Assembly (NCBI GenBank): GCA_051530055.1
Contig: CM121341.1
Location: forward strand, 5,124,784-5,188,783
DNA length: 64,000 nt
Source of the DNA: Neoechinorhynchus agilis
Taxonomy: Eukaryota; Animalia; Acanthocephala
Direction of reading: 5' to 3'
The translations under genes were made by a program, and so were the position numbers. Of the stretch, positions 16,484-51,297 are shown piece by piece (within the stretch, counting starts at the first letter, position 1; the number at the start of each line of letters is the position of its first letter). The notes below the pieces were generated by a model. That model was given only the letters and a program-made list of their open reading frames with translations, was not told the origin of the DNA and did not search any database.

Positions 16484-19400
16484 ATGGACCCAACTTCATG
16501 TAAGTCTTGTTAAAACACCAAAATAGTCCTTTGAACTATAAGTATAAAGTTGCTTCAAAGCTGCGTGTCTTGACCGATTATTATAACAACATAGCCAATA
16601 ATTCATTAGCCGCACCAAACGCTAATGATATTCTTATAGCTCTTCAATCTTTAAATGAGTACCTCCTTGGGTCAGTTCGGAAACCATCAATGCATTTGTT
16701 TAAAATATTACTATTTTTTAAAGACTCCTGGACAAATCTGCAGTAGATGTGTCGCTCAGTACAACCGTTTCGTCCAAAATAGCCAAACGAGCTTCTAGTC
16801 ACCCAACGATGGGATATGTTACATACTACAGCAGCCTTCTCGAATTTGTCGATGTCCTTTCACTTGTTCCAAGTTCAGAAATAGGTTTGGTCGAAGTATA
16901 CAGTGAAAAATTGAGCTTCAAATACTCTATAGTCCTCGTTGAAATCGCAAAAAGTCTTGCAATCATTTCACCATTCTTGGCTGAAGAACAACTCCAAAAC
17001 TACTTTGATGATTTTATCAACCTTATAGCAGTCTCCGGCACGGATCACCAAGAAGCAATCATCAATATTTTGTGCGAGTCAATAATTCCACAACTATTCG
17101 GTAACTGAAATTATTTTTATAACTATTTTGAAAAGATTGAGCTTTAAAAAGTTCACTCTAATATGGGAAGGAACCAAAAAGTCGTCGCGTCCTTTCCAGC
17201 ACTCATGTTGGCAGCCTTTGAGCATTTATCTCACTCAAATCTTCAATCCAGCCTATGTGAAGCTCTGTTAATGTCGAAACAAAATTGCATTGTTGTAAGT
17301 TACATCCTCCTCCGTTTTCACAATCTTCAACATCGTTGCTTCCTAACATAAGGATCTCATTTATGTGATTGCATTTGGTACAACCAATGCACGGATAGTC
17401 GCGACAGCTCTTTTATTTCGATACTGGCCAATGCTTAATTGCTTGGAAATCGACAAAAGAAGTTTAATTCTCAAAATACAAAGTAAATAGTTCTTTTTGT
17501 TTTCACGCATTTCATATTTTGAAAGTTAGCTCGAAACCCACCGTATTGTCAATCGTCCAAATGCATCGGCGCTTCTTCAATCGCAAGCTGGGTAAATCAC
17601 TTTCACAGTCTCGGTTAATTCCAACACTCAGTACAGATCTGTGGCGATGACTTCTTAGCAGTTCACGGAATCAATCTCCCTCCACCGTATTACCTTTGCA
17701 ATACCTGCTATAATCTCGAACCGGACGCTTTTAAAGCCAAATCTCGATTACTGGTTCAACCTGTAAACTCTATCGACCAAGAATGCGCTAATCCGGTATA
17801 CAAAAAGTCTTTTGTTTTACTCATTTAAACGATTGGATAGCAATGCCGATCCAGTGTAAAAGATACTTATGCTGTATGCTACTCAATAGAGTGCTGCCTA
17901 TCCAATCATAAGAAACCAATGAGTCTTTGTCTGGCTTGTCATGAAAATATTCACGAACAAGATGAAGATTGTGATCATGTGTACCAAACGAGCTTACCGG
18001 AATTCCCTGAACTTGACCATTCTACTCGATCGTGCCTTGTGGAGGCCATCATAAGGTCAGTTTTGATCTTAAAGAAGAAAATACTAAAGCTCACATATTT
18101 TAGTCTTCTTAAAGAATCGGTTTTGTCCAATACCAATATCCGAACATCGACCGAATCAGACAATGAGAATTCTCGACGTCTACTTTCAACGTATGGAATC
18201 AATCTTCTGATCAATTTCTTTGACCCGGCATCAATTCTACCCCCTGTAAGTCCTTTGATTCCTTTGCAAATGAGTATTAGTCGAACAAAAAACAGGAAGT
18301 CTTTGCAATGCTCCTTAGCGTCCTCTTTCAGTGGTTCACGGCCACAACCTGCCTGCCGGACGACGGTATCAGCAACTTGATGGAGAAACTAAAAGTGAAC
18401 TATGTACTCCCATGGCTCAGAACTGTCGTGGAGGAACACTCAGACCTTATAATCGCCCTACTAGTACCAAATTCAGTTGCTTTTGCTAAAATTGGATTCG
18501 TTTGGGACAATGTGACTGGTGAAAGCGCTGCTCTTCGAGAAGGACTCAATATCCTCTATAACTTGATTCCATATGATATAATTACAGAGGAAGTACTTGT
18601 TTTTTAAAGTAGAATTAAAAAATCTAACCGTCTTTATTTTAAGATTTGGAACAGCGTGATTCCATATTGGCTTGAGGTTATTTTTAAGGAAATAAATGAT
18701 AATGAGCTTCACGATTTCAAACCATTGTTCAGAAAACTTTTCGATACAGAAATGTCACCCATGCTACTATCTCAAGAAGCGTTCTACCGATTTCTGATTG
18801 AACGATTTGAATCTCCGTCTCCAGCGTCCGTTCAAGAACAAGCTCTTTGCTGGTTGCAGTTGTTGTGTCGACTGGACGTAGCGATTCCTTTTGACCTTTT
18901 ATTGGATTTCATGCACTTTGGAATTCAATCTCTTCTTAAATTAGAGTCTCGAGCAAGTAGACGAGAAGCAGTATTCTCCGGTGATCATCAAGTTATTGAC
19001 AAATCAAAAGTGCCATGCATTGTGTTCGACACCTATGAGACTTATCGAGCTCATCGAAATCAACTAATGTTGCAACAACTAACGGGTCGAGAAATGGTTT
19101 CTATCATTAAAGAAGAAGAGGAAGAGTTCATTATAAATGAAAACGAACTCAATGCAACTTGTTGCCTTCTTATGCTTGATGTTCTGTATAAACAAGTGGA
19201 AATCCAATCGTTTCCACCCCAATTTCAAGGAATGTATCATCCAATCAGTAAACGAATTGTATCGCTTCTAAATGCTCAACTCATGCTGCCTTGGTTTTTG
19301 AGACATCGATGTCAAGCAGCAAGTGCAAGTTCTGGAAAAAGCAGTACTCAAAGCTGCTTAAGTTGCGAAATTCAACTCACTTGGTACAATTTATGCAAGC

Positions 19401-22400
19401 GACTTCTTAAACACATTTCACCAAGAGATGAAGTAAAACTGCAGGACCTTGAATTCCCGAATACAACCGAATTAAAACGTTTGTATTCAGTCGTAATTGA
19501 ACCCAATTTACAGCTGATTTTAGGAAAACGTGAAGCCGACGATTACGACCGGGACGATGGTGATACCTTGATTGATTCGACCTCAGCTCAGAATATTGGT
19601 GGATTCGATCATTTGGCTGAAAACAGACCGGAGCATGGAATTTGGATCACTTCAAAAAGCGTCTATCATTTCAAATTATCCACAATACTTCCTCACATGC
19701 AATTGTTCTATTATACTTTAAAGGTTTGAGATTAAAGAATTCAATACCATTTAGGGCACATGACTTTGACCATACTCAAATATTAACCCTGGATTTAACG
19801 AAAATCGCAATCCGGAATCGCCTTGTGAACTTCCTATGGTTCAATTTGAGACATTCCCTCTTTTTCGGCCGATGCTTTAATAATCAAAATTTCGTCTATT
19901 GCAAAATTCTATTCTCAACATTTATCTTCGAGGTCGTAAAACCTTTGACTTGTCACTTAGAATATCATTTGGACAATGTGAAATTCCTGCGGTTCAATTT
20001 GAGACATTCTCTCTTTTTCGGCCGATGCTTTAATAATAAAAATTTCGTCCATTGCAAAATTCTATTCTCAACATTAGTCTTGGAGCTCGTAAAACCTTTG
20101 GCTGGTCACTTAGAATATCATTTGGACAATGTGAACTTCCTATGGTTCAAAACACCCCACAAAAAAACAACACCAACACCCCACAAAAAAAACCCAAAAC
20201 ACCACACAAAACCCCACTTAGAATATCATTTGGACAATGTGAATTCCTGGTTCAATTTGAGACATTCTCTCTTTTTCGGCGATGCTTTAATAATAAAATT
20301 TCGTCATTGCAAAATTCTATTCTCACATTTATCTTCGAGTTTGTAAAACCTTTGACTGGTCACTTAGAATATCATTTGGACAATGTGAATTCCTCGGTTC
20401 AATTTGAGACATTCTCTTTTTCGGCGATGCTTAATAATAAAAATTTCGTCATTGCAAAATTCTATTCTCAACATTTCTTGAGTGTAAAACCTTTGACTGG
20501 TCACTTAGAATATCATTTGGACAATGTGAATTCCTGGTTCAATTTGAGACATTCTCTCTTTTTCGGTCGATGCTTTAATAATCAAAATTTCGTCTATTGC
20601 AAAATTCTATTCTCAGCATTTATCTTAGAGTTTGTAAAACCTTTGACTGGTCACTTAGAATATCATTTGGACAATGTGAACTTCCTGCCTCCCTCATTCA
20701 ACGGCTTAATTTGCCGTGTATAGTTTCAGGACGGGCTCCCCGAGTTGAAATTAAACGTCAAATTCCCTTTTTTTTAACTGAACATTTACTCAAAGAATAC
20801 TGAGCAAGGATGTTTTTCACCGCTTTGTTTAGGAGATAAATCGTGTTCATCACGTCGATGCGCTCTACGATTTACTTTCGATTATCCATACATTAGTTTT
20901 GAACGATGAAGTGCTGGAAACATCCGCCAAGACGAATGTTGGATTTTTGACATACTGTGCGGAGAAAATGATAATCCCATCGTAAGTATTAACTTCTTAA
21001 CATCTTCTCCATCTTGAGAGCCATTAAGACTATGGCGAATATTCAAACTTGGCTACTGTCAACTTAATGAACTTTGTGTTACGCTGCTTTTGCATACAGT
21101 TGCTCATGAACAAGGAAAACTCGCTTGCTGGAACGCTATTGAACACGACTTTAACTCAAACGATTGGCAAGTTCGTGCGAGCGCCGTAACGGCTGTAATA
21201 TCAATTTCCGAACAACTGTCATTAAAGAAAATTAAAAGTCATTACCACGCTCTATCGCTTATTGCATTTGCTTTTATGAACATCAGTTTGGCAATTGAAG
21301 ACATTGAACCGGCAGTCAGTTTAAAAGCATTAACAATTACTGAAACAATCAGCGATCAATCGCTCAAGGCAATTTTAAATGCATTCGAATTCCAATTTGA
21401 TTCGGTCATAAACGATCGCAACTTGGTTCTTCAGCACGTTTACAAACTATTCCTTAGCCTCTTCAAACAGAACCGTCATATTCTCAACTGGGACTTCTTT
21501 ATGAACAGATTCGATACGTTGTTTTTGGAGAATCAAATACTTCTTGAAGAGTTGGGTGAGATTATCTCACCTACAAGTATTTCTGGATCTAATACCGAAA
21601 GTGAACATTTCAACAGGAAACTAAATTTGATTCGATTCGCCCTTGACAGCAGTGATGAGGTTACAAAATTAAGCGCATCGCCGAGAGCTCAATTTAGAAG
21701 ATCGCTTTTCGACTCGTCCGGAGTCGAGAAAAATGAAAAATTCGGTAAGTCAAAGTTATTTGTAGTTTAAAAATGTTGCTTGATCGAAACGAATCTCTCT
21801 CAATCGATTGCTACATTTATCTAAAGAATTCGTCAAAAATCGACTTATACTAAAAAAATTTGAAGAAATTAGTTGTGTTGCAATTTTCATTAATTTGATC
21901 ATAAACAGTGTCGACTTTTACCAAATTTCCAGTAACGATAAATCTCTTTAGATGAAAAATACCCTGCCTTTTCCTCGACCAAAAGAAGGGTTTCCAGTTT
22001 CGACACGAACATTGAAGTTCAAAGTGAGCCAAAGTGCATATATTTGGTCAAAATTTGAATTTTTTTTGCTAAGCAGGCACTCTCCAAGAAGTAGCAAACG
22101 AGTCAAGGACGACGACAACGGAAATGGTTGAGGGCAGGAATGAAAACACTCTTCATGCCTTAGTTCAGTTGCTTATGCAGGTATTTCTTTCAATAATTCA
22201 TCAAATGATGAACTACATCTATTATTAGTATATGCTTGTGAACGACCAATTAGCGGTCGAGGAAGACCGGATCGACCTGAAACATCAGGTAAAGTGTATA
22301 ATTTTTTCAACTAAACAATCCTTATAGACAATAGAATCTAGTCTTGAGGCATTTATTTAAACTCATGGGATATGAAAGGAAGAGCGATGCTTTAACAAAA

Positions 22401-25400
22401 CCACCAATCAAATTAAGGTCTGTGTTCTACTTCGATCAATCGATTACTATTTGACTTTAGAAGGAGCGCCGTTTTTAGGGCGTTTTTAGCGGATTTGTCA
22501 AAAGTCTTGGACAACAACTTCAGACTAGGAAACGTCTTACTTCCTTATGTCCTTAAGCTCCTTCATTACTGTCCAGCACCTAACTCTTCGGCCAATTGTA
22601 TTCGAATGAACGCCTATTCCATTTGCAATATGGAAGTTTCATTGCGGTTGGCATGGGCAAATGCCGTGTGCGTTATTCTCTACAAGGTACTAAATTTCGA
22701 TTTCCTTATTTTCTAAGCGGCAACTATCAAATCTTCAGATCAAAATCTTTTAAAAGTGTTTGAACATTGAATTATTTAGATAGGTTGTTTTCTAGCATAA
22801 AAACTAAAATGATTTTTTATAATTTTGGTAATCTCGCCTCATCAGTCATTGATTCGCAAGTTTTCTGCAATTTAAGAGATCCGAGCTTAAATTGTTGAAA
22901 ACTTGCGAATCAATAACTGATGAGGCAAGGTTACCTCTTTCGAAATATTTCCCTTATAAATCAAAATCAAAGTGGTTATGACCAAGAGTATGTTCACCAA
23001 AATAATACTTTGACTGATAAAATGATTTTATTTTTAAAATCCGATATTTCGGCCAAACAACCTTGATCAAAAGGCGTACAAGATTGCGCCGAATTATCAG
23101 AGTTTAAAAATAAAATCATTTTAATTTCTACGCCAGAAAACAACCCTGTAAAAGTGTAACTAGATCTTGTTCTTTGCCAATCGCCTTTATAAGAGAAAAT
23201 GCTACTCTCATCATTTTAAATTTCGTATTCGAATATCTTCGGAATTTCACCCAAAAGCCTCAACGATTTCTTGTAATTTTTAGTTGGTCAATCTTAACGT
23301 GGCCTTATTTTCCATTATGTCTTCTGATTGGCCGACTGTATTATTTAAGTGTTTAGAACATCCCTAACTCGTTTTTTTCCTTTCTAGGCACTCAACCAAC
23401 CGATATCTTAGACCTGAGCGATGTACAAACTCATAACCGTATGTTTCACAGTCTATCGGTTGGCTGAATGCCTACAAAGGAAAATAAGCCGAGCACCAAG
23501 AAGGTCCTAATTCCTAAAATCCGGTACAAATTGGAGTAATGTAATAGATCGTAAATTGCTTGCCGCTTATGATAAGTTTTAACAAATTGTTGGAATTTCT
23601 TCGTATCATTTAATGTGTATATAGTACCAAATCAACATGCCCGAATACGAGTTGCTGATTAATCGAATATTGAAAATCATGATAAACTCTATTAACACTT
23701 TTTCTCATGATTGTTCATGCTTCAAATGTACTGAAAGCCATGCCCTTGGAGTTGAGTATCGACAAGGTTGGTAGACCACTAATGAAGTTATTTTATTCAT
23801 TCAAAGTCTTTAAGATTCTAAGGAAACTGAAGGTAAGAAGTTTGAATGGCTCACCTTTCTTTAGTTAATTTCTTGTCCAAAAAAATTAGACGGTGCTCCA
23901 ACTGACCGTAGTACGAGCGTCGTCAACGAGAAGGCTTCAGTTTTACCCAGCGACAGTCCAAAAAAGATGAGGTGGTTCTTTTCGAAACCCCAGCGATTTC
24001 AAGATACTTCAAGTCTTACAGTCGCGACCTCTCCGTTCATAATAAATAAAAAGGAAACTGTGCGTCCATTTATTCCGTTAGAATCGATTCCCATAATCAT
24101 TGTGAGCTTTAGGGATCTTCCAAATTGAAAGCGACAAGCAGCTACGCAGACTTCAATCGCGATCCAAATACCAGTGTCGATCCAAGAATCTTAGAAAAAC
24201 GTTTGTATAATTCGCACACATTTGCCATTTCCAATTGCATTCAGATTCTATGGAGTCAGGCAGAGGCATATTCTCATATAAAGCGGATTCTTTAAGAATG
24301 AAGAATCCCATGCATAGAGTTCCATCAGATTTGTTTCATGTAAAATCGAAGAGATCCCGAAATGTCGAACAACTTATGTCCAAAAATAAGACAAAGTAAG
24401 TCTTTGTTGCAATTATCACGATTTAAGCTTTTTTCAACTTATGAACTAGACTCAGTAGAACTTCTGTTCATAAAATATCACATATTAAGCCAAAAAACGA
24501 GCTAAGTGGATCGTGCGAACTTTGTGGTGCAGAAATCGAAAACATACACATGAGTTCTTACTTTAAAGATAAAATCCATGAGTATGTGGAAGTCGGGAAA
24601 AATTATATATATCCAAGAATCACTTTAATTGAAATATTTCGTCCAATCGCACTGGACTTCCTTAGTCAATTATCTAAAAGGGAATTTGGCAACCTCATTG
24701 TCTTATCCAAAGGTATCCTCAACTTTATATCAAAAAATCACTTTAATTGAAATATTTCGTCCAATCACGCTGGACCTCTTTAGTCAATTATCTAAAAGGG
24801 AATTTGGCAACCTCATTGTCTTATCCAAAGGTATCCTCAACTTTATATCAAAAAATCACTTTAATTAAAATATTTCGTCAATCGCACTGGACTTCTTTAG
24901 TCAATTATCTAAAAGGGAATTTGGCAACCTCATTGTCTTATCCAAAGGTATCCTCAACTTTATATCAAAAAATCACTTTAATTGAAATATTTCGTCCAAT
25001 CGCATTAAACTTCTTTAGTCAATTATCTAAAAGGGAATTTGGCAACCTCATTGTCTTATCCAAAGATATCCTCAACTTTATATCAAAAAATCACTTTAAT
25101 TGAAATATTTCGTCCAATCGCACTGGACTTCTTTAGTCAATTATCTAAAAGGGAATTTGGCAACCTCATTGTCTTATCCAAAGATATCCTCAACTTTATA
25201 TCAAAAAATCACTTTAATTAAAATATTTCGTCCAATCGCACTGGACCTCTTTAGTCAATTATCTAAAAGGGAATTTGGCAACCTCATTGTCTTATCCAAA
25301 GGTATCCTCAACTTTATATCAAAAAATCACTTTAATTAAAATATTTCGTCCAATCACGCTGGACTTCCTTAGTCAATTATTGTTTGCAAGTGTTTACGAC

Positions 25401-28400: not shown

Positions 28401-28927
28401 TAAAGCTATGGACGATGTACTGTGAACAGTTTCAAGCCGATACCAGTGCTCTCGACGCCATAATGGCATTTTGGACACGCATCACACCGGGAATTCTTCA
28501 ACTGCTCGCTAATTCCAAATCAGTTAGTGAATCTACTTTAAAAAAAGTTCGATATTCATTCGTCTTATCAGCTTGCAGACATGATGAACTTACATTTCCT
28601 TAACTTAATTGAAGCTCTTCAAGAGAGCAACTCAGTAGTGTTAGCGAAGGTATCTACCAAAAAAGGAAGGCAATCCTTGAAATGATTCGCAACTTTTTTT
28701 AGCTCTTCCCACTCTGGGAACCAGTCCTTCACACGCATCCGTCTAATCTGCCATCTCACATACTCATCAGATTGCAAGCATGTCTTAATTTCAAGCCTTC
28801 AATAGAATCTCATAATGCATCGATGTTCAAGTATACGATTTTGCTCAAATGGCTTCAACGTCTTCAGTTCAAGATGGTTCAAATTGAATTACAATCATCT
28901 CATGCATCGCAGTTCTACACCCTTTAG
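16484..28927 (+). CDS. UNC79: UNC79, NALCN channel complex subunit (multi-exon)
   Basis: ATG at 16484 and intron 16500-16549 give MDPTSFASKLRVL. Motifs follow the remembered UNC79 order: FQWF...LMEKLK, SVQEQALCWL, FNSNDWQVR, LNWDFFMNRFDTL, LGNVLLPYVLKLL, PGNCKSIARQFIRCSLLQLAPNG, LRFLSWLLAGSLTH, FWTRITPGILQLL, and terminal QFKMVQIELQSSHASQFYTL-TAG (28925-28927). Not every exon boundary was traced. Confidence 0.95.
19822..20690. repeat. Intronic tandem array, ~153-bp monomer, ~6 copies
   Basis: GGACAATGTGAA at 19971, 20124, 20232, 20378, 20519 and 20669. It lies between the donor AAG|GTTTGA (~19724) and the acceptor TTTAG (~20832) of UNC79. Confidence 0.92.
23018..23123. mobile_element. Small MITE (ATATTTCGG family) in a UNC79 intron
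   Basis: TAAAATGATTTTATTTTTAAA arms are inverted; the interior matches 56644-56753 in opposite orientation. Confidence 0.75.
24620..25380. repeat. Intronic tandem array, 118-bp monomer, ~6.5 copies
   Basis: CTAAAAGGGAATTTGGCAACC recurs every 118 bp, between the UNC79 exons encoding CELCGAEIEN and DEESGGLCII. Confidence 0.95.
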
Positions 28928-29075: not shown

Positions 29076-29146
29076 GATGACGGATCCGAAGAGGTGGATG
29101 AGGGATCCGGTTCGAATGACGGATCCGGGGTGGATGACGGATGCCG
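29076..29146. repeat. Short decayed GGATGACGGATCCG repeat
   Basis: About four imperfect copies abutting the truncated SINE-like copy. Confidence 0.6.
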
Positions 29147-29284
29147 GACTCATCATTGAGTTTCCTTTTCCCTTCATCGAGGTATTTCGGCCCCTTTCGT
29201 TGTGGGTAATCGGTCATTGTGGATTTTGAACCCGCTGACCCTGGAACAGGGAGCAGGAGCTTTAGTCCACTTGACCACCTCAGC
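29146..29284 (-). mobile_element. 3'-truncated tRNA-headed SINE-like copy
   Basis: A box TGGTCAAGTGG (29277-29267) and B box GGTTCAAAATCC (29232-29221). Confidence 0.6.
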
Positions 29285-29399
29285 ACAACTACGGAATGTA
29301 CAAACTTCGCCACACATTGACCCGGATTAGCTTTCCGATTTAAGCATTCTTATGAGTGGCTCAGCCGTATCATAACATTGTATTAACAACAACACCCAC

Positions 29400-31607
29400 A
29401 TAAACGTGCTGCCACACTACTACCACAAAATAATCAATGGCACACTCTACATTAGTCTCTCGTTACCGCATTATCGATCACCACCTCAATCAATTTTGAA
29501 ACGTTGAGGAGGTCGCTCTTGTGCTTCTCCACAGTAGCTTCTCTGGATCCTTTTTTGGCACTAGTTTCTCCTGTTTCTCAGGATCGTCGACGGCCTCTCC
29601 TTCTTTTTCAGACACTCCCCCTTCACTGAATCCCCTTCGTTCCTTGATGACGACTCCTCATCTGTCTCTGTGGATCTCGATCCATCCATCCTATTCTCTG
29701 TGGTTCTATCTTAGAGAATTTTGTTTCATCCGACTCTGCACTGCTAGTATCTTTTCCCCATCTGTACCGTAAGTAGTCCCCCACCATGGATCCTCTGCCC
29801 TTTACCGTTTTCACCAAAAACACGATAGGATACCGGCCGTGTCCTGCGCTCTATCTTTCCTTCCATGTATCATCTATAGATCGCTTATACCAAATCAAGT
29901 CCTTGTCTTGAAATTGGTGCTCTTTCTTTAAATCGAACTTCACTTTCGAATTTTCTGAACCGTCTGTTTCGTCAATTGATGCATATTGTCTCGAACGACG
30001 TGGACAAACGTCTGCCTATTAATTTTTCAGCTGCTGTTATTTTAGTGACATTGTTCTCGGAATTTCTATAATAAAAAAGAAACGCCCATAATTCCTCTTG
30101 ATTAATATCCCCGATTTTGTCCATCGCTCTTCGTTTGAAAGTACCAACCATTCGTTCTACCAACCCATTGGTCTGAGTGTGATATGGACTCGATTTGATT
30201 TGTTGAATTCCCTGTCCTTCACAAAATACTTCAAACTGTTCTGACGTGAATTGGGGACCATTGCCGGAGACAATGTGGTTTGGAATTCCGAATCTGGCAT
30301 AGCAATCTTTAAGTTCGGTTATCACAGCACCGGTCGTTGCTCAACTTCCCAAGTTCCAAATCTAAGGCCACTTACTCGTGGCATCCACTAACAGCAAAAA
30401 CATCTTACCATAGATGGGCCCTGTCAAATCGATGTGAAATCTTCTCCATGGTGTTGCTGGACTTCGCCCCTGGCAGTGTTCGCATTGATTGACGAAGATT
30501 TCCACGTCTGCTCCAATTTTCGGCCACCAAACATAATGTATTGATAGGTTTCTCATGGCCTCGATGCCCGGAAGGGCGCAATTACTTAGGAATGACAATT
30601 CTTTGTTGCACCATGAGCATGCCGTTTTCCTGTGACAATTCGCTTCTTCGGTCCCAGTATTTCTTTTCATCTCCATCCATCTTGGCTCCCAACCGTATTT
30701 CAAAAACCTAACTATTCGTTGAGTCTCATCATCGTAGCCTCGATAATCTTCCTTCTTGATAGCTGACATTGTTTGGCACCTTCGTTCTGAATCGTGAACG
30801 TCCTGGCGTCGACAGTGCTCTCCTTTGCTTCAAGACTTTGTGGGTTGGATAAGCGAGATAGACAATCGGTGTACAAATTCGTTTTGCCCTTCACATATCT
30901 CACATCGTAATCGTACTCGCCCAAAATGATCGCCCAACGTACTATCCGTCCATTGGTCATCTTGCTTAATATTCTGTTTTCTCCAAATATATGCCTTAAC
31001 GGCTGATGATCCGTTTCGATCGTGAAGTGTCGGCCAAAAAGATATGAAATCTCTTAACAACATATACGATAGCCACCGCTTCCTTATCCAACGTTGAATA
31101 TTTTAGCTCTGCTGGGCTGATTTTCTTGCAAGCAAACATGATAGGCATATTTTTCTGGTTTCGCTCGTCAAATTGGAAAATAGCAGCTCCAACTCCTTTC
31201 TCCCTAGAATCACAATCTAGGGTCACTGGTTTCGTTTCATCGAATAGGATCAAACTGATAAGATTCGAAAAGGCCTCCTTTACATCAATAAACGCATTTT
31301 TTTCATTTTTGCCTTATTTCCACTTGACATTCACTGTTAGCGAATCCTGCAGCGGTGCACAAATTGTTTGTAAATGTGGTATGAATTTGTCTAAGAAGTT
31401 CACCGCGCCTAAAAAGGATCTCAACTCTTTCTTATAAACAGGATCTGCCGCCAGTTTCATATCATTCACTCGTTCTGCACTTGCCTGTCATTTCTCCTTC
31501 ATCAGAGAGTGTCCCAAATAACTAACATGCTCTTCTAGAAATTGACACTTGTCCTTCTTTACTCGCACTCCCGCCGATTCCAGCAGCCGATAGTCTCTTT
31601 TATAGAT
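29400..31607 (-). mobile_element. Dead Ty3/Gypsy pol fragment (RT C-terminus, RNase H, integrase), copy 1
   Basis: AGVRVKKDKCQFLEEHVSYLGH; LDCDS...GVGA; KYSTLDKEAVAIV; RIVRWAIILGEYDY; YVWWPKI..DVE..V..C..CQ; FGIP..IVSGNGPQF...PYHTQTNGLVERMV. Many frameshifts, no YxDD motif, and SDNG has become SGNG. Confidence 0.92.
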
Positions 31608-31896
31608 ATTTTTCCATACACGGCCGAATGGACATCCACAATCCACCGCGAATTCGGTCTGGACAATGCTGGTCTGCGCCGAATGCCCCAAGACCGTACG
31701 GTAATAGAGTTTGTAAGAATCCCTCCGGATTCTCAGATACCTCTCCAGGAGGAGGCGGGACTCATCATTGAGTTTCCTTTTCCCTTCATCGAGGTATTTC
31801 GGCCCCTTTCGTTGTGGGTAATCGGTCATTGTGGATTTTGAACCCGCTGACCCTGGAACAGGGAGCAGGAGCTTTAGTCCACTTGACCACCTCAGC
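31608..31896 (-). mobile_element. Most complete tRNA-headed SINE-like copy (~290 bp)
   Basis: Head GCTGAGG-TGGTCAAGTGG (A box 31889-31879) and B box 31844-31833; the body is shared with 11106-11232, 5876-5925 and 33934-34068. The 3' boundary is approximate. Confidence 0.55.
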
Positions 31897-32009
31897 ACAA
31901 CTACGGAATGTACAAACTTCGCCACACATTGACCCGGATTAGCTTTCCGATTTAAGCATTCTTATGAGTGGCTCAGCCGTATCATAACATTGTATTAACA
32001 ACAACACCC

Positions 32010-33650
32010 ACATAAACGTGCTGCCACACTACTACCACAAAATAATCAATGGCACACTCTACATTAGTCTCTCGTTACCGCATTATCGATCACCACCTCA
32101 ATCAATTTTGAAACGTTGAGGAGGTCGCTCTTGTGCTTCTCCACAGTAGCTTCTCTGGATCCTTTTTTGGCACTAGTTTCTCCTGTTTCTCAGGATCGTC
32201 GACGGCCTCTCCTTCTTTTTCAGACACTCCCCCTTCACTGAATCCCCTTCGTTCCTTGATGACGACTCCTCATCTGTCTCTGTGGATCTCGATCCATCCA
32301 TCCTATTCTCTGTGGTTCTATCTTAGAGAATTTTGTTTCATCCGACTCTGCACTGCTAGTATCTTTTCCCCATCTGTACCGTAAGTAGTCCCCCACCATG
32401 GATCCTCTGCCCTTTACCGTTTTCACCAAAAACACGATAGGATACCGGCCGTGTCCTGCGCTCTATCTTTCCTTCCATGTATCATCTATAGATCGCTTAT
32501 ACCAAATCAAGTCCTTGTCTTGAAATTGGTGCTCTTTCTTTAAATCGAACTTCACTTTCGAATTTTCTGAACCGTCTGTTTCGTCAATTGATGCATATTG
32601 TCTCGAACGACGTGGACAAACGTCTGCCTATTAATTTTTCAGCTGCTGTTATTTTAGTGACATTGTTCTCGGAATTTCTATAATAAAAAAGAAACGCCCA
32701 TAATTCCTCTTGATTAATATCCCCGATTTTGTCCATCGCTCTTCGTTTGAAAGTACCAACCATTCGTTCTATCAACCCATTGGTCTGAGTGTGATATGGA
32801 CTCGATTTGATTTTTTGAATTCCCTGTCCTTCACAAAATACTTCAAACTGTTCTGACGTGAATTGGGGACCATTGCCGGAGACAATGTGGTTTGGAATTC
32901 CGAATCTGGCATAGCAATCTTTAAGTTCGGTTATCACAGCACCGGTCGTTGCTCAACTTCCCCCAATTCAAATCTAAGGCCACTTACTCGTGGCATCCAC
33001 TAACAACAAAAAACATCTTACCATGGATGGGCCCTGTCAAATCGATGTGAAATCTTCTCCATGGTGTTGCTGGACTTCGCCCCTGGCAGTGTTCGCATTG
33101 ATTGACGAAGATTTCCACGTCTGCTCCAATTTTCGGCCACCAAACATAATGTATTGATAGGTTTCTCATGGCCTCGATGCCCGGAAGGGCGCAATTACTT
33201 AGGAATGACACTTCTTTGTTGCACCATGAGCATGCCGTTTTCCTGTGACAATTCGCTTCTTCGGTCCCAGTATTTCTTTTCATCTCCATCCATCTTGGCT
33301 CCCAACCGTATTTCAAAAACCTAACTATTCGTTGAGTCTCATCATCGTAGCCTCGGTAATCTTCCTTCTTGATAGCTGACATTGTTTGGCACCTTCGTTC
33401 TGAATCGTGAACGTCCTGGCGTCGACAGTGCTCTCCTTTGCTTCAAGACTTTGTGGGTTGGATAAGCGAGATAGACAATCGGTGTACAAATTCGTTTTGC
33501 CCTTCACATATCTCACATCGTAATCGTACTCGCCCAAAATGATCGCCCAACGTACTATCCGTCCATTGGTCATCTTGCTTAATATTCTGTTTTCTCCAAA
33601 TATATGCCTTAACGGCTGATGATCCGTTTCGATCGTGAAGTGTCGGTCGG
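32010..33650 (-). mobile_element. Dead Ty3/Gypsy pol fragment, copy 2, with a ~620-bp internal deletion
   Basis: Near-identical to copy 1 at a 2612-bp offset (ORFs 29521 vs 32133); RNase H and RT are lost at the TGTCGG-TCGGTCTGG junction near 33645. Confidence 0.92.
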
Positions 33651-34068
33651 TCTGGACAATGCTGGTCTGCGCTCAATGCCCCAAGACCGTACGGTAAAAG
33701 AGTTTGTAAGAATCCCTCCGGATTCTCAGATACCTCCAGGAGGCGGGACTCATCATTGAGTTTCCTCTTCCCTTCATCGAGGTATTTCGGCCCCTTTCGT
33801 TGTGGGTAATCAGTTATTGTGGATTTTGAACCCGATGACCCTGAAACAGACTCAGCACAACTACGGAATTTACAAACTTCGCGACACATTGACCCGGATT
33901 AGCTTTCCGATTTAAGCATTCTTATGAGTGGCTAGGAAGTATCTGAGAATCCGAATAGAACTCTTTTACCGTACAGTCATGAGCATTGAGCGCAGACCAG
34001 CGCTTTCATAGACCGAAATCAACGGACCGTGTGTCCGTATTTCAGCCGTGTGTATGGTGGGAAAAAAG
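33650..34068. mobile_element. Rearranged SINE-like remnants forming a fold-back
   Basis: 33650-33933 is a minus-strand copy lacking the A box; 33934-34068 is the body in the opposite orientation. Confidence 0.6.
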
Positions 34069-34121
34069 AATAACTTTAAAACATATATCCATGAAAAAAC
34101 TAATAATTTTTTCGATTAAAG

Positions 34122-35222
34122 ATGTGTGACGAAGAAGTTGCCGTCCTTGTATTGGACAATGGATCTGGAATTAGCAAAGCTGGATTTGCAGGGGACGATT
34201 TGCCCAGGGCCGTGTTCCCTTCAATTGTCTGCATTGATCAAAAGGACTCTTACGTTGGAGACGATGCTGAAAGCAAACGTGGAATCTTGACCCTCAAATA
34301 TCCGATTGAACATGGGATTGTCACTAATTGGGACGATATGGAGAAGATTTGGCACCACACATTTTACAACGAGCTTCGTGTGGCACCGGAGGAGCATCCT
34401 ATCCTATTGACCGAGGCCCCTTTAAATCCCAAAGCCAACCGAGAAAAAATGACACAAATAATGTTTGAAACTTTTAATGCTCCTGCAATGTACTTAGCAA
34501 TTGATACCGTTTTGTCATTGTTCGCTTTTGGTCGAACGACTGGGATCGTTTTGGATTCAGGGTATGGTGTTACTCATGCTGTACCCATTTACGAAGGATA
34601 CACACTTCCTAATGGGATACAGCGTCTTGAATTCGGAGGTCGAGATTTGACAGAGAATCTTATGAAGATTATGACGGAAGGTGGGTATACTTTTATGACT
34701 ACCACAGAGCGAGAAATTGTACGAGATATCAAAGAGAAACTTTGCTACGTTGCATTGGACTTTGAATTGGAAATGGAAGATGCTGCTTCGTCGAGCACTC
34801 TTGAAAAGAGTTATGAACTACCTGATGGACAAATAATTACTATTGGTAATGAAAGATTTAGGTGCCCAGAAGCTCTATTTCAACCTTCTTTCCTCGGAAT
34901 GGAGATTGTAGGAATCCACGAAGCTTGCTATAATTCAATTGTGGATTGCGATATAGACATACGTAAAGATCTCTATTCAAACATTGTCCTTTCTGGAGGT
35001 TCTACAATGTTTCCAGGAATCGCTGATCGAATGCAAAAGGAGATGACGTCTTTGGCTCCGAGCAATGTCGAAATCAAGATCATCGCTCCACCAGAGCGTA
35101 GATATTCTGTTTGGATCGGTGGATCTATTCTAGCGTCATTGCCTACTTTCGAATCAATGTGGATTTCAAAGGAGGAATACGACGAAAGTGGACCTTCGAT
35201 CGTGCATAGAAAGTGCTTCTAA
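34122..35222 (+). CDS. Divergent actin (366 aa), intronless CDS, with a 10-aa deletion at the D-loop
   Basis: [38 protein letters not shown] and the HRKCF terminus; intact ORF. Confidence 0.97.
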
Positions 35223-36864
35223 AAAAGTGGCACTCGTAGTGATGATAGGTAGAGTAGCCTTACGCAAATAAAACGAAATGCATTCGTTGATCGGTGATGA
35301 TTTTGCGAGAAATCTCAGAAACGGAATTTCAGTGTTAATACAAAATTATGCTTACTCGTTTTTGGAAATTCATAATGTTCACGATATTTGTTTGTGCCGT
35401 CATTGTGCCAGACTTGATCTTTTTTGGCGAACGGTGTATATTCCAAATATTTTTGAATAAGATTAACTTTTCAATCCTCATGCGAATCCTTATAGGATTT
35501 CCTCATGAGTTAGAAATCCAACTCCGCGTAGTGCGAAACAGTAAAGTAAGCTAAATTTTGAAAGCCTTTCGCCGCTGCTAGCAAACCTGAACATTAGTAG
35601 GCTATAAGCTAACCCATGCAGGAATTATGGTAACTTTCGGTGGCTTGTCGATACTGCCTTTCACAGTTCCAACCGGGAGCTTGATATTCCGTGATCAAAC
35701 ATTCGTAGGATTCGGGATCAGTTCGCTAGCGAAAGGAAAAATGGAAAAACCAGCTTGTAAAATGTCCCCCAGAGTGGTAAGAACTAAAATTCCAAAAATT
35801 CGAAGAAATCTAGAACCTCCAGCTTTTTGGGTCCCGAAACGAAGAAAATCTCAAAGCTTTCTACCGTTCTTGTAGGAATGACTCCTCCCGAACAAAACCG
35901 AATCTGATCTCCGTCTTGGATTAACGCAAATGTTCATCCGCGACATTTTACTTACAAAAATCGGGGCGCAAAATGTTTCTTGTTGTCGTCCACCCCTGAA
36001 TTAGGTTTTGTGGAGATTTTATTCATTCCACGCTCTATAAATGCTTTCAGGGTGAATCGAAAGTTACTTTGATTACTTCAGAATAAAGGCACTAGTAAGT
36101 TCGATGTGATTTCAAATAATTCTGCGAAGAAAATATACGCTTTAGTGACCATTAGAATTGTAGAAACATAATAAACCAATCGCCAGCAATGGAAAAAGTT
36201 TTCTTAGATTTTTCAGCACTGGCGGCAATCGCTTAATGGAACTGTCGACAACCATCCAACAAAAGTAATCTATCGATACAATGACAACTATTGAGGGATT
36301 TGTGGGGCGTCGAGACGACGAATTAAGGACAAGTCGCCAATCTATCAATAAAAACAAGTACTCTTGATTCGCTGTGACTCCATTTGTAAAATATATGCCA
36401 AATCCCAATCATTCTACAATCAAAAAATGTAATCCACAAACCAAAGTAACGCATTAAAACTGATCGTTTAGATCACTTAGTAACCTGGATAATTTAGTGG
36501 CTTCGTCGCAGCTGGGAATAAAAGCGAGTAAAAGAAACCAAGGCATTCTATAAGAGCGATCACCTCGAGCAATTTGATACCGGTGACCTGAAACATTTAA
36601 CCGTAATGATTACGATATTGAAACGGATACGAACGTGTGAAAACGGGAGAGTCAAGATGGTTGGCGAGTGCTTTGAGTTCCTTGGTAGCATCAATAGATG
36701 GTTCGATAAACGATAAATCGTTCAATATCTCTATTGCCTTCTCGTTTTCGGAAATAAAGAGACAAAACGAAAAACATTAAACCGGATCACATTGCCAAAC
36801 AGTCAATATTTCTGTCACATCGTCTATCTTTATGGGAAAATAAAACGAACGAGGCTTATATGAC

Positions 36865-37909: not shown

Positions 37910-40900
37910 AAGGTGGCCCTGGCGTATCCGAGTATTTGGTTCAAAAGAGGGTCTGGCGTAACCGAGTATCCGGCTCAAAGAAAAACCTAGCGTATCTGGG
38001 TAATTGGTTTAAAGGAGGACCTGGCGTATCTGAGTATCCGGCTCAAAGGAAAACCTAGCGTATCTGAGTATTTGGCTCAAGGGAGGACCTGGAGTATCTG
38101 AGTATTTGGCTCAACGGAGGACCTGGCGTATCTGAGTATCCGGCTCAAATTAAAACCTAGCGTATCTAGGTATCCGGCTCAAAGAAAAACTTTCGTATCT
38201 GGGTATTTGGTTCAAGGGAGGACCTGGAGTATCTGAGTATTTGGTTCAAAGGAGGACCTGGCGTATCTGAGTATCCGGCTCAAAGGAAAACCTGGTGTAA
38301 CGGAGTATCCGGCTCAAATTAAAACCTAGCGTATCTGGGTATTTGGTTCAAAGGACGACCTGGCGTATCTGAGTATCCGGCTCAAAGGAGGACCTGGTGT
38401 AGCGGAGTATCCGGCTCAAAGATCTACCTGGCGTATCTGAGTATTTGGCTCAAAGGAGGACCTGGCGTATCTGAGTATCCGGCTCAAGGAAAACCTGGTG
38501 TAACGGAGTATCCGGCTCAAATTAAAACCTAGCGTATCTGGGTATTTGGTTCAAAGGACGACCTGGCGTATCTGAGTATCCGGCTCAAAGGAGGACCTGG
38601 TGTAGCGGAGTATCCGGCTCAAAGATCTACCTGGCGTATCTGAGTATTTGGCTCAAAGGAGGACCTGGCGTATCTGAGTATCCGGCTCAAAGGAAAACCT
38701 GGTGTAACGGAGTATCCGGCTCAAATTAAAACCTAGCGTATCTGGGTATTTGGTTCAAAGGACGACCTGGCGTATCTGAGTATCCGGCTCAAAGGAGGAC
38801 CTGGTGTAGCGGAGTATCCGGCTCAAAGATCTACCTGGCGTATCTGAGTATTTGGCTCAAAGGAGGACCTGGCGTATCTGAGTATCCGGCTCAAAGGAAA
38901 ACCTGGTGTAACGGAGTATCCGGCTCAAATTAAAACCTAGCGTATCTGGGTATTTGGTTCAAAGGACGACCTGGCGTATCTGAGTATCCGGCTCAAAGGA
39001 GGACCTGGTGTAGCGGAGTATCCGGCTCAAAGATCTACCTGGCGTATCTGAGTATTTGGCTCAAGGGAGGACCTGGAGTATCTGAGTATCCGGCTCAAAG
39101 ATCCACCTGGCGTATCCGAGTATTTGGCTCAACGGAGGACCTGGCGTATCTGAGTATCCGGCTCAAATTAAAACCTAGCGTATCTAGGTATCCGGCTCAA
39201 AGAAAAACTTTCGTATCTGGGTATTTGGTTCAAGGGAGGACCTGGAGTATCTGAGTATTTGGTTCAAAGGAGGACCTGGCGTATCTGAGTATCCGGCTCA
39301 AAGGAAAACCTGGTGTAACGGAGTATCCGGCTCAAATTAAAACCTAGCGTATCTGGGTATTTGGTTCAAAGGACGACCTGGCGTATCTGAGTATCCGGCT
39401 CAAAGGAGGACCTGGTGTAGCGGAGTATCCGGCTCAAAGATCTACCTGGCGTATTTGAGTATTTGGCTCAAAGGAGGACCTGGCGTATCTGAGTATCCGG
39501 CTCAAAGGAAAACCTGGTGTAACGGAGTATCCGGCTCAAATTAAAACCTAGCGTATCTGGGTATTTGGTTCAAAGGACGACCTGGCGTATCTGAGTATCC
39601 GGCTCAAAGGAGGACCTGGTGTAGCGGAGTATCCGGCTCAAAGACTACCTGGCGTATCTGAGTATTTGGCTCAAGGGAGGACCTGGAGTATCTGAGTATT
39701 TGGCTCAACGGAGGACCTGGCGTATCTGAGTATCCGGCTCAAAGGAAAACCTAGCGTATCTAGGTATCCGGCTCAAAGAAAAACTTTCGTATCTGGGTAT
39801 TTGGTTCAAGGGAGGACCTGGAGTATCTGAGTATTTGGTTCAAAGGAGGACCTGGCGTATCTGAGTATCCGGCTCAAAGGAAAACCTGGTGTAACGGAGT
39901 ATCCGGCTCAAATTAAAACCTAGCGTATCTGGGTATTTGGTTCAAAGGACGACCTGGCGTATCTGAGTATCCGGCTCAAAGAAAAACTTTCGTATCTGGG
40001 TATTTGGTTCAAGGGAGGACCTGGAGTATCTGAGTATTTGGTTCAAAGGAGGACCTGGCGTATCTGAGTATCCGGCTCAAAGGAAAACCTGGTGTAACGG
40101 AGTATCCGGCTCAAATTAAAACCTAGCGTATCTGGGTATTTGGTTCAAAGGACGACCTGGCGTATCTGAGTATCCGGCTCAAAGGAGGACCTGGTGTAGC
40201 GGAGTATCCGGCTCAAAGATCTACCTGGCGTATCTGAGTATTTGGCTCAAAGGAGGACCTGGCGTATCTGAGTATTTGGCTCAAGGAGGACCTGGCGTAT
40301 CTGAGTATCCGGCTCAAAGAAAACCTAGCGTATCTGAGTATTTGGCTCAAAGGAGGACCTGGCGTATCTGAGTATCCGGCTCAAAGATCCACCTGGCGTA
40401 TCCGAGTGTTTGGTTCAAAGGAGGACCTGGCGTATCTAGGTATCCGGCTCAAAGAAAAACCTAGCGCATCTGAGTATTTGGCTCAAAGGAGGACCTGGCG
40501 TATCTGAGTATCCGGCTCAAAGATCGACCTGGCGTATCTGAGTATCCGGCTCAAAGATCACCTGGCGTATCGAGAGTATCCGGCTCAAAGGAGGACCTGG
40601 CGTATCTGAGTATCCGGCTCAAAGATCCACCTGGCGTATCCGAGTGTTTGGTTCAAAGGATGACCTGGCGTATCTGAGTATCCGGCTCAAAGGAGGACCT
40701 GGTGTAGCGGAGTATCCGGCTCAATCGGCTCAAAACCTCGATCGGTCAAAAACCCACACCCAAAGATCTACCTGGCGTATCTGAGTATCCGGCTCAAAGG
40801 AACCTGCGTATCTGAGTAAAGAACCTGCGTATCGAGTATCCGGCTCAAAGGAAAACCTGGCGTATCTGAGTATCCGGCTCAAAGGAGGACCTGGCGTATC

Positions 40901-41883
40901 TGAGTATCCGGCTCAAAGATCCACCTGGCGTATCCGAGTGTTTGGTTCAAAGGATGACCTGGCGTATCTGGGTATCCGGCTCAAAGGAGGACCTGGTGTA
41001 GCGGAGTATCCGGCTCAAAGATCTACCTGGCGTATCTGAGTATTTGGCTCAAAGGAGGACCTGGCGTATCTGAGTATCCGGCTCAAAGGAGGACCTGGCG
41101 TATCTGAGTATCCGGCTCAAAGGAAAACCTAGCGTATCTGAGTATGGCTCAAAGACCTGGGTACGAGTATGGCTCAAGACCTGGCGTATCTGAGTATCCG
41201 GCTCAAAGAAAAACCTAGCGTATCTGGTATCCGGCTCAAAGAAAAACTTCGTATCTGAGTATCCGGCTCAAAGGAACCTGGCGTATCTGAGTATTTGGTT
41301 CAAAGGAGGACCTGGCGTATCTGAGTATCCGGCTCAAAGGACAACCTGGCGTATCTGAGTATCCGGCTCAAAGAAAAACCTAGCGTATCTGGGTATTTGG
41401 TTCAAAGGAGGACCTGGCGTATCTGAGTATCCGGCTCAAAGAAAACCGTACGGTATGGTCAGAACCTGGCGTATCTGAGTATTTGGTTCAAAGGAGGACC
41501 TGGCGTATCTGAGTATCCGGCTCAAAGGAAAACCTGGCGTATCTGAGTATCCGGCTCAAAGAAAAACCTAGCGTATCTGGGTATTTGGTTCAAAGGAGGA
41601 CCTGTCGTATCTGAGTATCCGGCTCAAAGGAACCTGGGTACGAGTATCCGGCTCAAAGACACCTGCGTATTGGTATGGTCAAAGAACCTGCGTATCTGAG
41701 TATGGCTCAAAGGAGGACCTGGCGTATCTGAGTATCCGGCTCAAAGGAAAACCTAGCGTATCTGGGTATTTGGTTCAAAGGAGGACCTGTCGTATCTGAG
41801 TATCCGGCTCAAAGATCCACCTGGCGTATCCGAGTGTTTGGTTCAAAGGAGGACCTGGCGTATCTGAGTATCTGGGTCAAAGG
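37910..41883. repeat. Minisatellite, 34-bp monomer, ~115 copies, with a ~204-bp (6-mer) higher-order repeat
   Basis: Consensus AAAGGAGGACCTGGCGTATCTGAGTATCCGGCTC; the variant GGTGTAACGG occurs at 38294, 38497, 38701, 38905 and 39313. Confidence 0.97.
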
Positions 41884-49260: not shown

Positions 49261-50633
49261 ATGTTGCTCTTAATTTTGATCACAAATGCCCTAAGTATAG
49301 GTGAGTATATCCTTTTCGTTTGATTGAACGTTAACTACTTTAAAAAGTTCTGGGACTATACCCGATTATACACCAAATCGCCTACAAATTCAGTTTTAAA
49401 CCACCTCAAATAACTGCGTCCGACCATACGATCCCATTTTGGACGGGAGGCCAAAATGTTGAAGTGCATCCTGACTTTATCCGCTTATCCGGTCCAGAAT
49501 GCAGTGAAACCGGACGAATTTGGTGTAATCGACTCTTTGAAGGCGAAAGTTGGACGTTCGAGAGCAGATTTCGAATTTCCGGAATTATCGGTGGATACGG
49601 TATGGCTTTCTGGTTCACAAAAGCGGAATTAACGAGAGGAAGTGCTTTCGGCGCATCCAGTATCTTCGAAGGACTGTCTGTAGTGCTAGACACGTACAGT
49701 AAAACGTGGAAGGATAAAACTGAGATGATTGGAGTAGTTGTGAACAACGGTACGCATATTCCATCAAATGGCGGATTTGAACTCGGTCATTTTGCTTCGG
49801 CGGCGATGCTGAAATTCAGAAATTCACTCAAACCATGCACATTGAGAGTGACTTACTTGGATCGGACACTGATTGTTGAGTTTAAATCGGACAAAAGTTC
49901 CGTATTCACTCCTTGCGCTCGAATCGAAAGCGTAGATTTGCCGCGAAAGGGGTATTTTGGTATCAGTGTTGGCTCGAAACGACATTCTAAAGACTCTTAC
50001 GACCTTTACTCATTTGTCGTTCATAAGTTGATCAAGTCCGAGAGGAAATCAATAATCGACGACGGTGATGATGATGATGATGATCAACGGCGACAAAAGG
50101 TGTCATACCATCGTCGGTCAATGCAATTGAACAATGAACTCGAGGCAAGAGCTGAAGATGCAAACAAAAATTTAGACAACTTATTGAGTGGTGATATCCA
50201 ATATTTGCTAGATCGATTGAAGGACATTCAATGGCAGAATAGCGAGGAAAAAGCGACCGAAATCAAAGCGACGTGGCAAAAGATAATGGCATTGGCCTTA
50301 GAGCATAGTGAACTCGACAAAGAAGGCATTGCTCAAATGCAGAGTTTTTTTGAACTGATGTTAGAAAACGTATCTCCTGCCGATTTGCCGACAAATCTTG
50401 ATTTTCTTTTTTCCCAATTGGACAGTGCAATCCATGGGAAATCGGAAGATAGATTGGAACGCGTTCAGCACGATACGGAACGAATGTTCTTATTTTTGCA
50501 AAAGTTGAACAAAATGATAGATCGTTTGGATATGCTTGGGTTCGAAAGAGAAATGTATCGACAACAAGGAGCCATGATGGTTAAACACAAGGAATTATTG
50601 GAGAAAGAGCAGGAAATGATTAAGAAAATGTAA
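49261..50633 (+). CDS. L-type lectin, ERGIC-53/LMAN1-like
   Basis: Signal-peptide exon 49261-49300 and intron 49301-49347 (GTGAGT...AAAAAG), then YKFSFKPP...TIPFW...DFIRL, GMAFWF, FEGLSVVLD and GYFGIS, followed by a helical stalk. The 3' end is uncertain (possible donor at 50630). Confidence 0.85.
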
Positions 50634-51297
50634 GTACTATGTGTATATAAAATCGTTAGTGGATTCATTTTGCTCGTTGTATAGTCATCAAAACCAACAG
50701 ATCCTTTGGGAAGGCTTAAAGGAAATACAAACGGTATTTTTCTTAGTCTAAATAACTGCTCCATCTATAAAAATATTTAGGAATATGAAGATCTAAGTTA
50801 CTTACGAACCTTTTTTTACTGGATACTCTTATTCGTTATAGTTTTCATCATTTACGAAGTTCTCAGTTCTTGTAACTACTTTCAGGATAGCTCTAGACAA
50901 ATTGAAAAAAAGTACTGTTAGATATTTAGATGTCAACGAATAAATACAATATTTATACTTAAGAAAGAAGAGTTGATCTCGATAATTTTCCGTCATCGTA
51001 TTGGTTTTTTTATGGTCGGATGTTTTCGTCAATTCTGTTCCTAGGGTGGTGGACTTGAGAAGGTTTTATCAATTTTGATTTAGACGGATTCTACAATGCA
51101 TCAATTCCATTTAAATTCCAGAATTCTTCGTTGTTTCGCATAATAATCTCGAAAATTCGATATCATTAAATTTTCAAAATCTCCTCTCTCTCTCAATTCT
51201 GATTGGTGGTCGGCTTTGCACTAAACGATTAAGCTCTTTTTCGCGATGCAGACTCAAAGTATGCAAGAATGCTGTTTTTTTATTGACATATTAAATT

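Follow-up and report, generated by a model that had tools for sequence, protein, structure and literature searches.

We analysed a 64,000-nucleotide stretch of the genome of Neoechinorhynchus agilis, an eoacanthocephalan parasite of mullets, which is referred to as the window below (positions 5,124,784 to 5,188,783 of the forward strand of the 19.4 Mb chromosome CM121341.1, assembly GCA_051530055.1). At positions 34122-35222 of the plus strand, the window carries an open reading frame (ORF) for a divergent actin of 366 codons, which runs from ATG to TAA with zero internal stops and is a called gene model of the assembly. The N. agilis genome assembly comprises 46.2 Mb with three large scaffolds, is 31.6% coding and lacks many metazoan core genes; its gene models were obtained by BRAKER with RNA-seq evidence (PMC12690905).

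When the protein was compared by phmmer with all solved structures, residues 1-366 aligned with actins (E ~1e-207), including C. elegans actin (1d4x, E=1.2e-206), Drosophila Act5C and the vertebrate beta, gamma and alpha actins. The alignment with solved actins contains a single gap, which removes ten residues of the D-loop. Identity to conventional actins across animal phyla is ~83% (80-84%), or 80-81% if the gap is counted, and PF00022 is recorded for the product. The initial annotation of this locus had described an intact frame of 366 residues, and the uninterrupted ORF, the end-to-end alignment and the annotated gene model agree with it. Canonical actin-related protein (Arp) classes are typically at most 55% identical to actin. 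The N. agilis protein is full-length, highly identical to conventional actins and nearer to them than to any Arp class, and it is not an orthologue of any of the canonical Arp1-Arp10. No group closer to it than the conventional actins was found in libraries of 5.8 billion and 1.84 billion proteins, and no second actin was found within the 64-kb window. Judged by its sequence, the protein is a member of the actin family that fails two defining features of conventional actins, the D-loop and Gln137, and that has no canonical Arp orthologue.

Substitutions were called against a consensus built from 29 distinct conventional actins among the database matches (the panel), and a change is termed unique if the residue is absent from this panel. 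The features of the ORF, all on the plus strand, are the following:

34122-35222 (stop codon included), plus strand: intronless ORF of the divergent actin, 366 amino acids; annotated gene, CM121341.1:5158905-5160005
34227-34238, plus strand: D-loop remnant GTC TGC ATT GAT (V-C-I-D), from the alignment to conventional actins
34272-34478, plus strand: residues 60-128, base of subdomain 2 and core of subdomain 1; V103I is the only change (1/69)
34503-34529, plus strand: hinge helix, residues 137-145; 4/9 changed (Q137D, A138T, Y143F, S145F)
34554-34568, plus strand: second phosphate loop DSGYG; D154, G156 and G158 kept, D157Y
34611-34637, plus strand: residues 173-181, HAILRLDLA changed to NGIQRLEFG; 6/9 changed, R177 kept; densest cluster of unique changes

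The shortened D-loop and other substitutions

A stretch of 13 residues stands in place of the 23 residues found in conventional actin. The difference is an in-frame loss of 30 nucleotides with its junction at 34229/34230, as had been noted initially for residues ~36-45, and the alignment can be read as a deletion of residues 36-45 or equally of residues 35-44, because V35 and V45 are both valine. The three surviving loop residues are all substituted (G46C, M47I, G48D), so that the canonical-length loop with P38, R39, H40, V43, M44 and M47, which marks a conventional actin, is missing. I34 and K50 are separated by 5 residues in the N. agilis protein, as compared to 15 in 90 of 122 representative clusters. 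Among the 110 actin domains in the 120 best database matches, the N. agilis protein is the only one with a shortened D-loop, and a literature search for natural or engineered D-loop-deleted actins returned nothing relevant.

Slippage between the codon pairs for V35-G36 and V45-G46 might have produced the deletion. We also observed that three actin models in the database (P0018, P0063 and P0075) carry insertions exactly between Q41 and G42, which correspond to intron read-through; an intron at codon 41/42 is widely conserved, and the N. agilis deletion (36-45) spans the same site. Aberrant splicing or imprecise intron loss at the 41/42 site is therefore a conceivable origin as well. Separately, the top-scoring solved match was PDB 8rx1 chain 7, the actin of the gamma-tubulin ring complex, whose deposited sequence is without residues 40-49. 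This chain outranks full-length actins because the query also lacks the loop; we thus rejected it as a natural relative and regard its rank as an artefact of the loop missing in both sequences.

Apart from the deletion, the protein is extensively substituted. Relative to the consensus it carries 62 substitutions, 25 of which fall on panel-invariant positions, and 41 of the changes are unique. The replacements pointed out in the initial annotation were all recovered: Q137D (codon GAT, 34503-34505) and A138T, which turn AIQAV into AIDTV, D157Y (codon TAT, 34563-34565), and the loss of the basic residues R196, K284 and K326 (R196G, K284D, K326E). All of these lie on invariant columns except K326 (28/29). 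Further changes include K336R in the hinge loop, S350P, M16I and C17S. The boundaries of the hinge helix, in which four of nine residues differ, were taken from a published definition (10.1101/309534).

The retained residues are those of the nucleotide-binding core (D11, S14, G15, K18, H73, D154, G156, G158, H161, R177, E214, G301 and G302). The phosphate-1 loop, the phosphate-2 loop, E214 and G301-G302 are thus present, with M16I, C17S and D157Y as the changes within the loops. The catalytic pair Gln137/His161 is broken, since H161 is kept and Q137, invariant in 29/29 panel actins, is replaced, and the hinge helix is not intact. Polar contacts between subunits are kept at K61, R62, K113, E167, Y169, E195, D244, E270, D286, D288 and R290, and the hydrophobic plug (262-270) is retained.

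How unusual these changes are depends on the group with which the protein is compared. We assembled 78 full-length divergent representatives of the actin family, with 38-72% identity to the consensus of actin, by searching 1.84 billion cluster representatives exhaustively. Within this set, Q137 is kept in 47 and replaced in 31, and D157 is kept in 41 and replaced in 37, with tyrosine in 5; the two residues are invariant only within conventional actins. The positions that are invariant or nearly so throughout the superfamily (D11, S14, K18, G156, E214, G301, G302) are all retained in the N. agilis protein. The initial emphasis on active-site changes was therefore right in that Q137D and D157Y are real, but overstated, as both positions are replaced in ~40-47% of the divergent clusters. 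At the level of sequence, the changes do not break the protein but place it in the sequence space of Arp-like or actin-like proteins.

The same applies to the loop. Short D-loops of at most 11 residues between I34 and K50 (range 5-11) occur in 7 other clusters of the 122, which stem from unidentified metagenomic eukaryotes, a Mortierella-type fungus, a foraminiferan and a brittle star. Going by these sequence comparisons, the unusual point is the combination of changes in the D-loop, Q137 and D157 in a protein that is still ~83% identical to actin.

Evidence for selection on the divergent copy

The same 78 representatives served as a scale of constraint, on which the conservation of a position is the frequency with which they keep the consensus residue. 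The substitutions in the N. agilis protein follow this superfamily gradient closely (Mann-Whitney P=1.2e-14). Changed positions make up 32 of 65 (49%) at a conservation below 0.3, 20 of 116 at 0.3-0.6, 9 of 105 at 0.6-0.8, 1 of 40 at 0.8-0.9 and 0 of 40 at 0.9 or above. The gradient persists if only the 41 unique changes are considered (P=2.8e-8). It also holds at the 260 panel-invariant positions, for which the ancestral state is certain; here, 11 of 60 weakly conserved positions but 0 of 56 highly conserved ones are changed (P=1.4e-4). Neutral decay would ignore such a gradient, which argues for purifying selection on the actin fold and the nucleotide core. Based on this pattern, the constraints specific to conventional actin appear relaxed or redirected, with the fold and the nucleotide core remaining under purifying selection.

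Additional properties of the ORF are of varying weight. The replacements are conservative, with a mean BLOSUM62 score of +0.35 compared to -0.45 for random non-synonymous mutation (P ~3e-4), and a mean of +0.05 if the 41 unique changes are taken by themselves. The single indel preserves the frame. The open frame by itself is weak evidence of selection: in a neutral simulation on the reconstructed ancestor, the probability of finding no stop was 0.04 for 62 replacements, and 0.13 if only 38 of them count. Unique changes fell on columns invariant in conventional actins in 25 of 41 cases, as opposed to 71% expected (P=0.17), which is uninformative.

The changes are also unevenly distributed along the protein. 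Residues 60-128 carry one change compared to 6.5 expected after adjustment for conservation (P=0.007; P=6e-4 under uniform scatter), the hinge helix carries 4 compared to 0.76 expected on the same basis (P=0.004), and residues 173-181 carry 6 compared to 1.8 (P=0.001); these regional tests are post hoc, as the regions were chosen after the data had been seen. The frozen block 60-128 could alternatively be a gene-conversion tract from a conventional actin. The GC content at third codon positions (GC3) is 0.48 in this block and 0.36 elsewhere, but the difference is not significant (P=0.10-0.15).

Flanking sequence and alternative origins

The sequence next to the ORF contains candidate splice and polyadenylation signals and a transposon array close to its start:

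29138-33980, minus strand: pol fragment of a long terminal repeat (LTR) retrotransposon, tandem duplicate with a period of 2612 and 99% identity, with RNase H and integrase-like ORFs
34099-34121, plus strand: CTAAT (34099-34103) and TTAAAG (34116-34121), candidate branch point and 3' splice acceptor, from the sequence
35267-35272, plus strand: AATAAA polyadenylation-type signal, 45 nucleotides past the stop codon

The CTAAT and TTAAAG motifs, which the initial annotation had placed directly before the ATG, were found at these positions, and an in-frame TAA lies 18 nucleotides upstream of the ATG. As a side observation on splice sites in this genome, the 3' acceptor adjoining an exon of the UNC-79 gene (window positions 18630-18660) reads TTTTAAG and not TTTCAG, and TTTAAG and TTTTAG are twice as frequent as TTTCAG in the window; the TTAAAG before the actin ATG fits this acceptor type. 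The pol array comprises two copies that are 99% identical and a partial third copy (94-97%), with minus-strand ORFs at 32984-33889. It follows a multi-exon UNC-79 gene that ends near 28927, and expressed Ty3 elements have been noted in N. agilis (PMC12690905).

Hallmarks of retroposition are missing: no A-run of six or more was found downstream, nor flanking direct repeats of nine nucleotides or longer. Many genes of the window are single long exons, and the missing introns are therefore not diagnostic. We rejected a processed pseudogene or retrocopy, given that the locus has no poly(A), no target-site duplications and no stop or frameshift, and that its substitutions are non-neutral.

The reading that we favour, with moderate confidence and from sequence evidence, is that of a maintained, functionally shifted and lineage-specific actin paralogue of N. 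agilis, which would now be under constraints of an actin-like or Arp-like kind. Several observations weigh against it. No protein more than 84% identical was found among 5.8 billion, and hence no orthologue in that collection. For the neighbouring cyclophilin, the best match other than itself is 66% identical, with insects and nematodes mixed among the matches, and a close relative of N. agilis seems to be unsampled; the lineage is fast-evolving, with few sequenced relatives. The transposon array ends ~140 bp before the actin ATG and leaves only ~140 bp for a promoter region. Codon usage of the ORF equals the local background (GC3 0.385). The post hoc choice of regions and the possible conversion tract described above belong on the same side.

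These points have to be read together with the possibility that the gene is a decaying duplicate, i.e., a pseudogene that is young or was inactivated recently and has so far escaped stops and frameshifts by chance. Such a copy would account for the changes at 25 positions that do not vary among conventional actins, Q137 and D157 among them, for the missing orthologue, for the young transposon array so close upstream and for codon usage indistinguishable from background, and the neutral chance of a frame without stop codons, as simulated, is not negligible. It is also possible that function was lost very recently, after the gene had long been functional. What speaks against decay is the substitution pattern, with 0/40 changes at the most and 32/65 at the least conserved positions (P=1e-14) and the corresponding contrast at positions of certain ancestral state, together with the conservative replacements, the lone in-frame indel and the 69-residue block with a single change. 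Moreover, pseudogenes are expected to be rare in a genome as compact as this one (46 Mb, 31.6% coding). The young pseudogene that had been named as an alternative at the outset is thus disfavoured, and we regard a decaying duplicate as improbable. An error of assembly or consensus, behind which a real gene with a full D-loop would be hidden, appears highly improbable. Only one assembly was seen, and its long reads are mostly Nanopore R9.4. However, it is a MaSuRCA hybrid of Illumina, Nanopore and Hi-C data with 17 Gbp of Illumina sequence for 46 Mb (PMC12690905), which makes an assembly error an unlikely source of the 30-nucleotide loss. Exactly 30 nucleotides are missing, the junction lies outside homopolymers and simple repeats and the flanking codons are substituted too, which also argues against an artefact; the three adjacent substituted codons and 59 substitutions elsewhere represent real divergence. 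Public N. agilis data comprise 74 RNA-seq libraries (PRJNA1223661), a Trinity transcriptome (Zenodo 10.5281/zenodo.17199078) and the JBMGUZ reads.

Taken together, the sequence evidence indicates that the locus is probably not a dead copy but encodes a specialised actin-like protein. Lineage-specific "non-canonical Arps" derive from canonical actin, are confined to one lineage, diverge under selection and are often expressed with a bias for sex or tissue; of these traits, the sequence supports the derivation from actin and the selection. Mammals, too, are reported to encode divergent non-canonical Arps.

Downstream of the actin gene lie a small orphan gene, a 34-bp minisatellite and cyclophilin B. 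The minisatellite (37910-41000) consists of at least 83 copies of the unit AAGGAGGACCTGGCGTATCTGAGTATCCGGCTCA with ~78% matches and a raised GC content of 0.48-0.50. Introns of the UNC-79 gene (19642-20723 and 24629-25339) contain ORF-like tandem repeats, with the peptides ...LEYHLDNVN... and MKYFVQSHWTSLVNYLKGNL.... A gene for an L-type (ERGIC-53-type) lectin, ACOME3_001100, lies 15 kb downstream of the actin (49261-50921). Its paralogue ACOME3_003098, which is 85% identical, is located 8 Mb away on CM121341.1, at 13.26 Mb, next to a gene for a retroviral-type aspartic protease, and no actin was found within 10 kb of it. A scan of the window against Rfam gave no match.

Possible mode of action and relation to known actins

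Few eukaryotic proteins are as constrained as conventional actin, and current models of polymerisation, and of the ATP hydrolysis that it triggers, centre on the D-loop, Gln137 and the hinge. In the filament, M44 inserts into a pocket formed by L142, Y143, T148 and I165, and P38 lies packed against Y169. The pocket that holds F375, at the C-terminus of the neighbouring subunit, is completed by V43. R39 forms a longitudinal pair with D286 and a lateral one with E270, and H40 is in contact with the W-loop; a major part of the 1180 Å2 long-pitch interface is contributed by the D-loop (10.1101/309534; PMC12674126). As P38, R39, H40, V43 and M44 are deleted in N. agilis, the normal pointed-face contact would be impossible, and the initial proposal of a non-polymerising actin, which is reasonable from the sequence, gains in plausibility from the loss of these named longitudinal and lateral contacts. 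The capping, germ-line or ciliary roles that had also been put forward initially are speculative.

On this basis, the following mode of action can be proposed. The protein would fold as an actin and bind nucleotide, but would be unable to donate a D-loop to a neighbouring subunit. Filament-type flattening would be uncoupled from ATP hydrolysis by Q137D, the remodelled hinge, D157Y and the changed neighbours of R177; for comparison, the Q137A mutant of actin has a low ATPase activity (PMC10062479). Going by these residues, polymerisation-coupled ATP hydrolysis has probably been given up. The barbed face keeps its acceptors E167, Y169, D286, D288 and R290, and Y143F removes the hydroxyl that closes the M44 pocket through a hydrogen bond to G168 (PMC12674126). 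The protein might thus still dock on the D-loop that a conventional actin presents, or on ligands that bind the barbed-face cleft. In addition, partners of subdomain 1 would still be engaged, as suggested by the frozen block 60-128 and by the N- and C-termini, which are unchanged.

Most likely, as far as the sequence goes, the protein is a nucleotide-binding, monomeric or chain-terminating actin-like protein and not a regular filament subunit. The narrower proposal that it acts specifically as a terminator or weak link is tentative. In its full form, this proposal holds that an expressed, D-loop-less chain terminator or weak link would dock on pointed-end D-loops through its conserved barbed face and ungated M44 pocket, with no normal polymerisation-coupled hydrolysis; in this form we consider it unlikely. 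The proposed docking and terminating behaviour is derived from residue roles in the literature. The predicted structures are of low confidence, with a mean pLDDT of 32.6 (12-sequence alignment) or 33.8 (40-sequence alignment); the low values stem from the homologues supplied, all of which are at least 70% identical.

It is also conceivable, if quite unlikely, that the protein is a filament-forming isoform with a short D-loop, which polymerises with itself or with other actins via a co-evolved interface. Most polar inter-subunit contacts and the hydrophobic plug are indeed retained, and both faces of the longitudinal interface are changed (T201M, A204T and V247I on one side, M283V, K284D, V287I, T324N, M325V and K326E on the other), such that these two-sided changes of subdomain 4 and subdomain 3 could reflect co-evolution. 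Against this stand the altered Gln137 and hinge and the deletion of M44, P38, V43, R39 and H40 from the D-loop, whose contact is described as a major one along the long pitch. The sensitivity of filaments to much smaller changes points in the same direction: oxidation of M44 and M47 alone leads to fast disassembly (10.1101/309534), and a single D-loop residue, together with subdomain 3, decides on the incorporation of Plasmodium actin into filaments (PMC6055528).

If the nucleotide-binding, non-filamentous reading is correct, the protein illustrates which parts of actin are dispensable once filament formation is not needed and which are not, namely the nucleotide core and residues 60-128. It might also offer a ready-made reagent to study the action of a D-loop-less subunit at filament ends. 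Should the terminator proposal hold true, actin filaments would be regulated here by a protein that itself derives from actin, and the gene would amount to a natural experiment on the function of the D-loop.

Compared with conventional actin (1D4X, Act5C), the N. agilis protein shares the MCDEEV N-terminus, the HRKCF C-terminus, the DNGSG phosphate-1 loop, the SGG adenosine motif and the hydrophobic plug as well as H73, D154, G156 and H161. It differs in the D-loop, of which ten residues are lost and the remaining three substituted, and further in Q137D, Y143F, S145F, D157Y, six of nine residues at 173-181, R196G, K284D, K326E, K336R and S350P. Conventional actins rarely differ from each other by more than a few per cent, as opposed to the 62 substitutions found here.

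Actins that do not polymerise are known from the laboratory, for instance AP-actin with A204E/P243K (PDB 2HF3/2HF4) and subtilisin-cleaved actin, in both of which contacts of the pointed face are disturbed. The D-loop deletion, M47I and A204T of the N. agilis protein affect the same pointed-face contacts, in the D-loop and in subdomain 4 around residues 204 and 243, as these changes and as the oxidation of M44 and M47 by MICAL (10.1101/309534). In contrast to such laboratory or enzymatic modifications, the changes in N. agilis are natural and are accompanied by ~60 other substitutions.

The protein has evolutionary precedents, since actin-like paralogues that have diverged, and likewise short D-loops, are found repeatedly across the eukaryotes. 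Proteins with a short loop (P0382, a JGI "actin-related protein"; P0315; P0348; and P0339, "actin, cytoplasmic 1-like" of Amphiura filiformis) share the 5-11 residues between I34 and K50, and several of them also lack Q137 or D157. However, they are 55-59% identical to the N. agilis protein, and none is an orthologue; moreover, the seven short-loop proteins have 477-796 amino acids compared to 366, and those longer than ~600 must carry extra sequence. A change in the loop of subdomain 2 is likewise linked to specialised function in Arp2, for which a D-loop microexon and the testis paralogue Arp2D have been described (10.1101/2025.10.12.681909; PMC10002617). Unlike the N. agilis protein, these variants act inside the Arp2/3 complex, differ in length by five residues and are not derived from actin.

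Among described phenomena, the lineage-specific, actin-derived paralogues of the Drosophila obscura group and Arp53D come closest. D-ActL1-3 of the obscura group are 96.8, 66.8 and 57.1% identical to Act5C, a range that brackets the 83% of the N. agilis protein, and are expressed in testis (PMC7038667). D-ActL1-3 and Arp53D are young duplicates of canonical actin that are confined to one lineage, diverge fast and keep an open frame, a description that would also apply to the N. agilis gene (PMC7038667, PMC8291977). They differ in that their motif for ATP binding and hydrolysis is reported as preserved, that testis expression is documented and that they belong to another phylum; a D-loop deletion in D-ActL or Arp53D did not come up in the published text searched. 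The N. agilis gene would add a case from a spiralian parasite to the lineage-specific actin-derived paralogues described in Drosophila.

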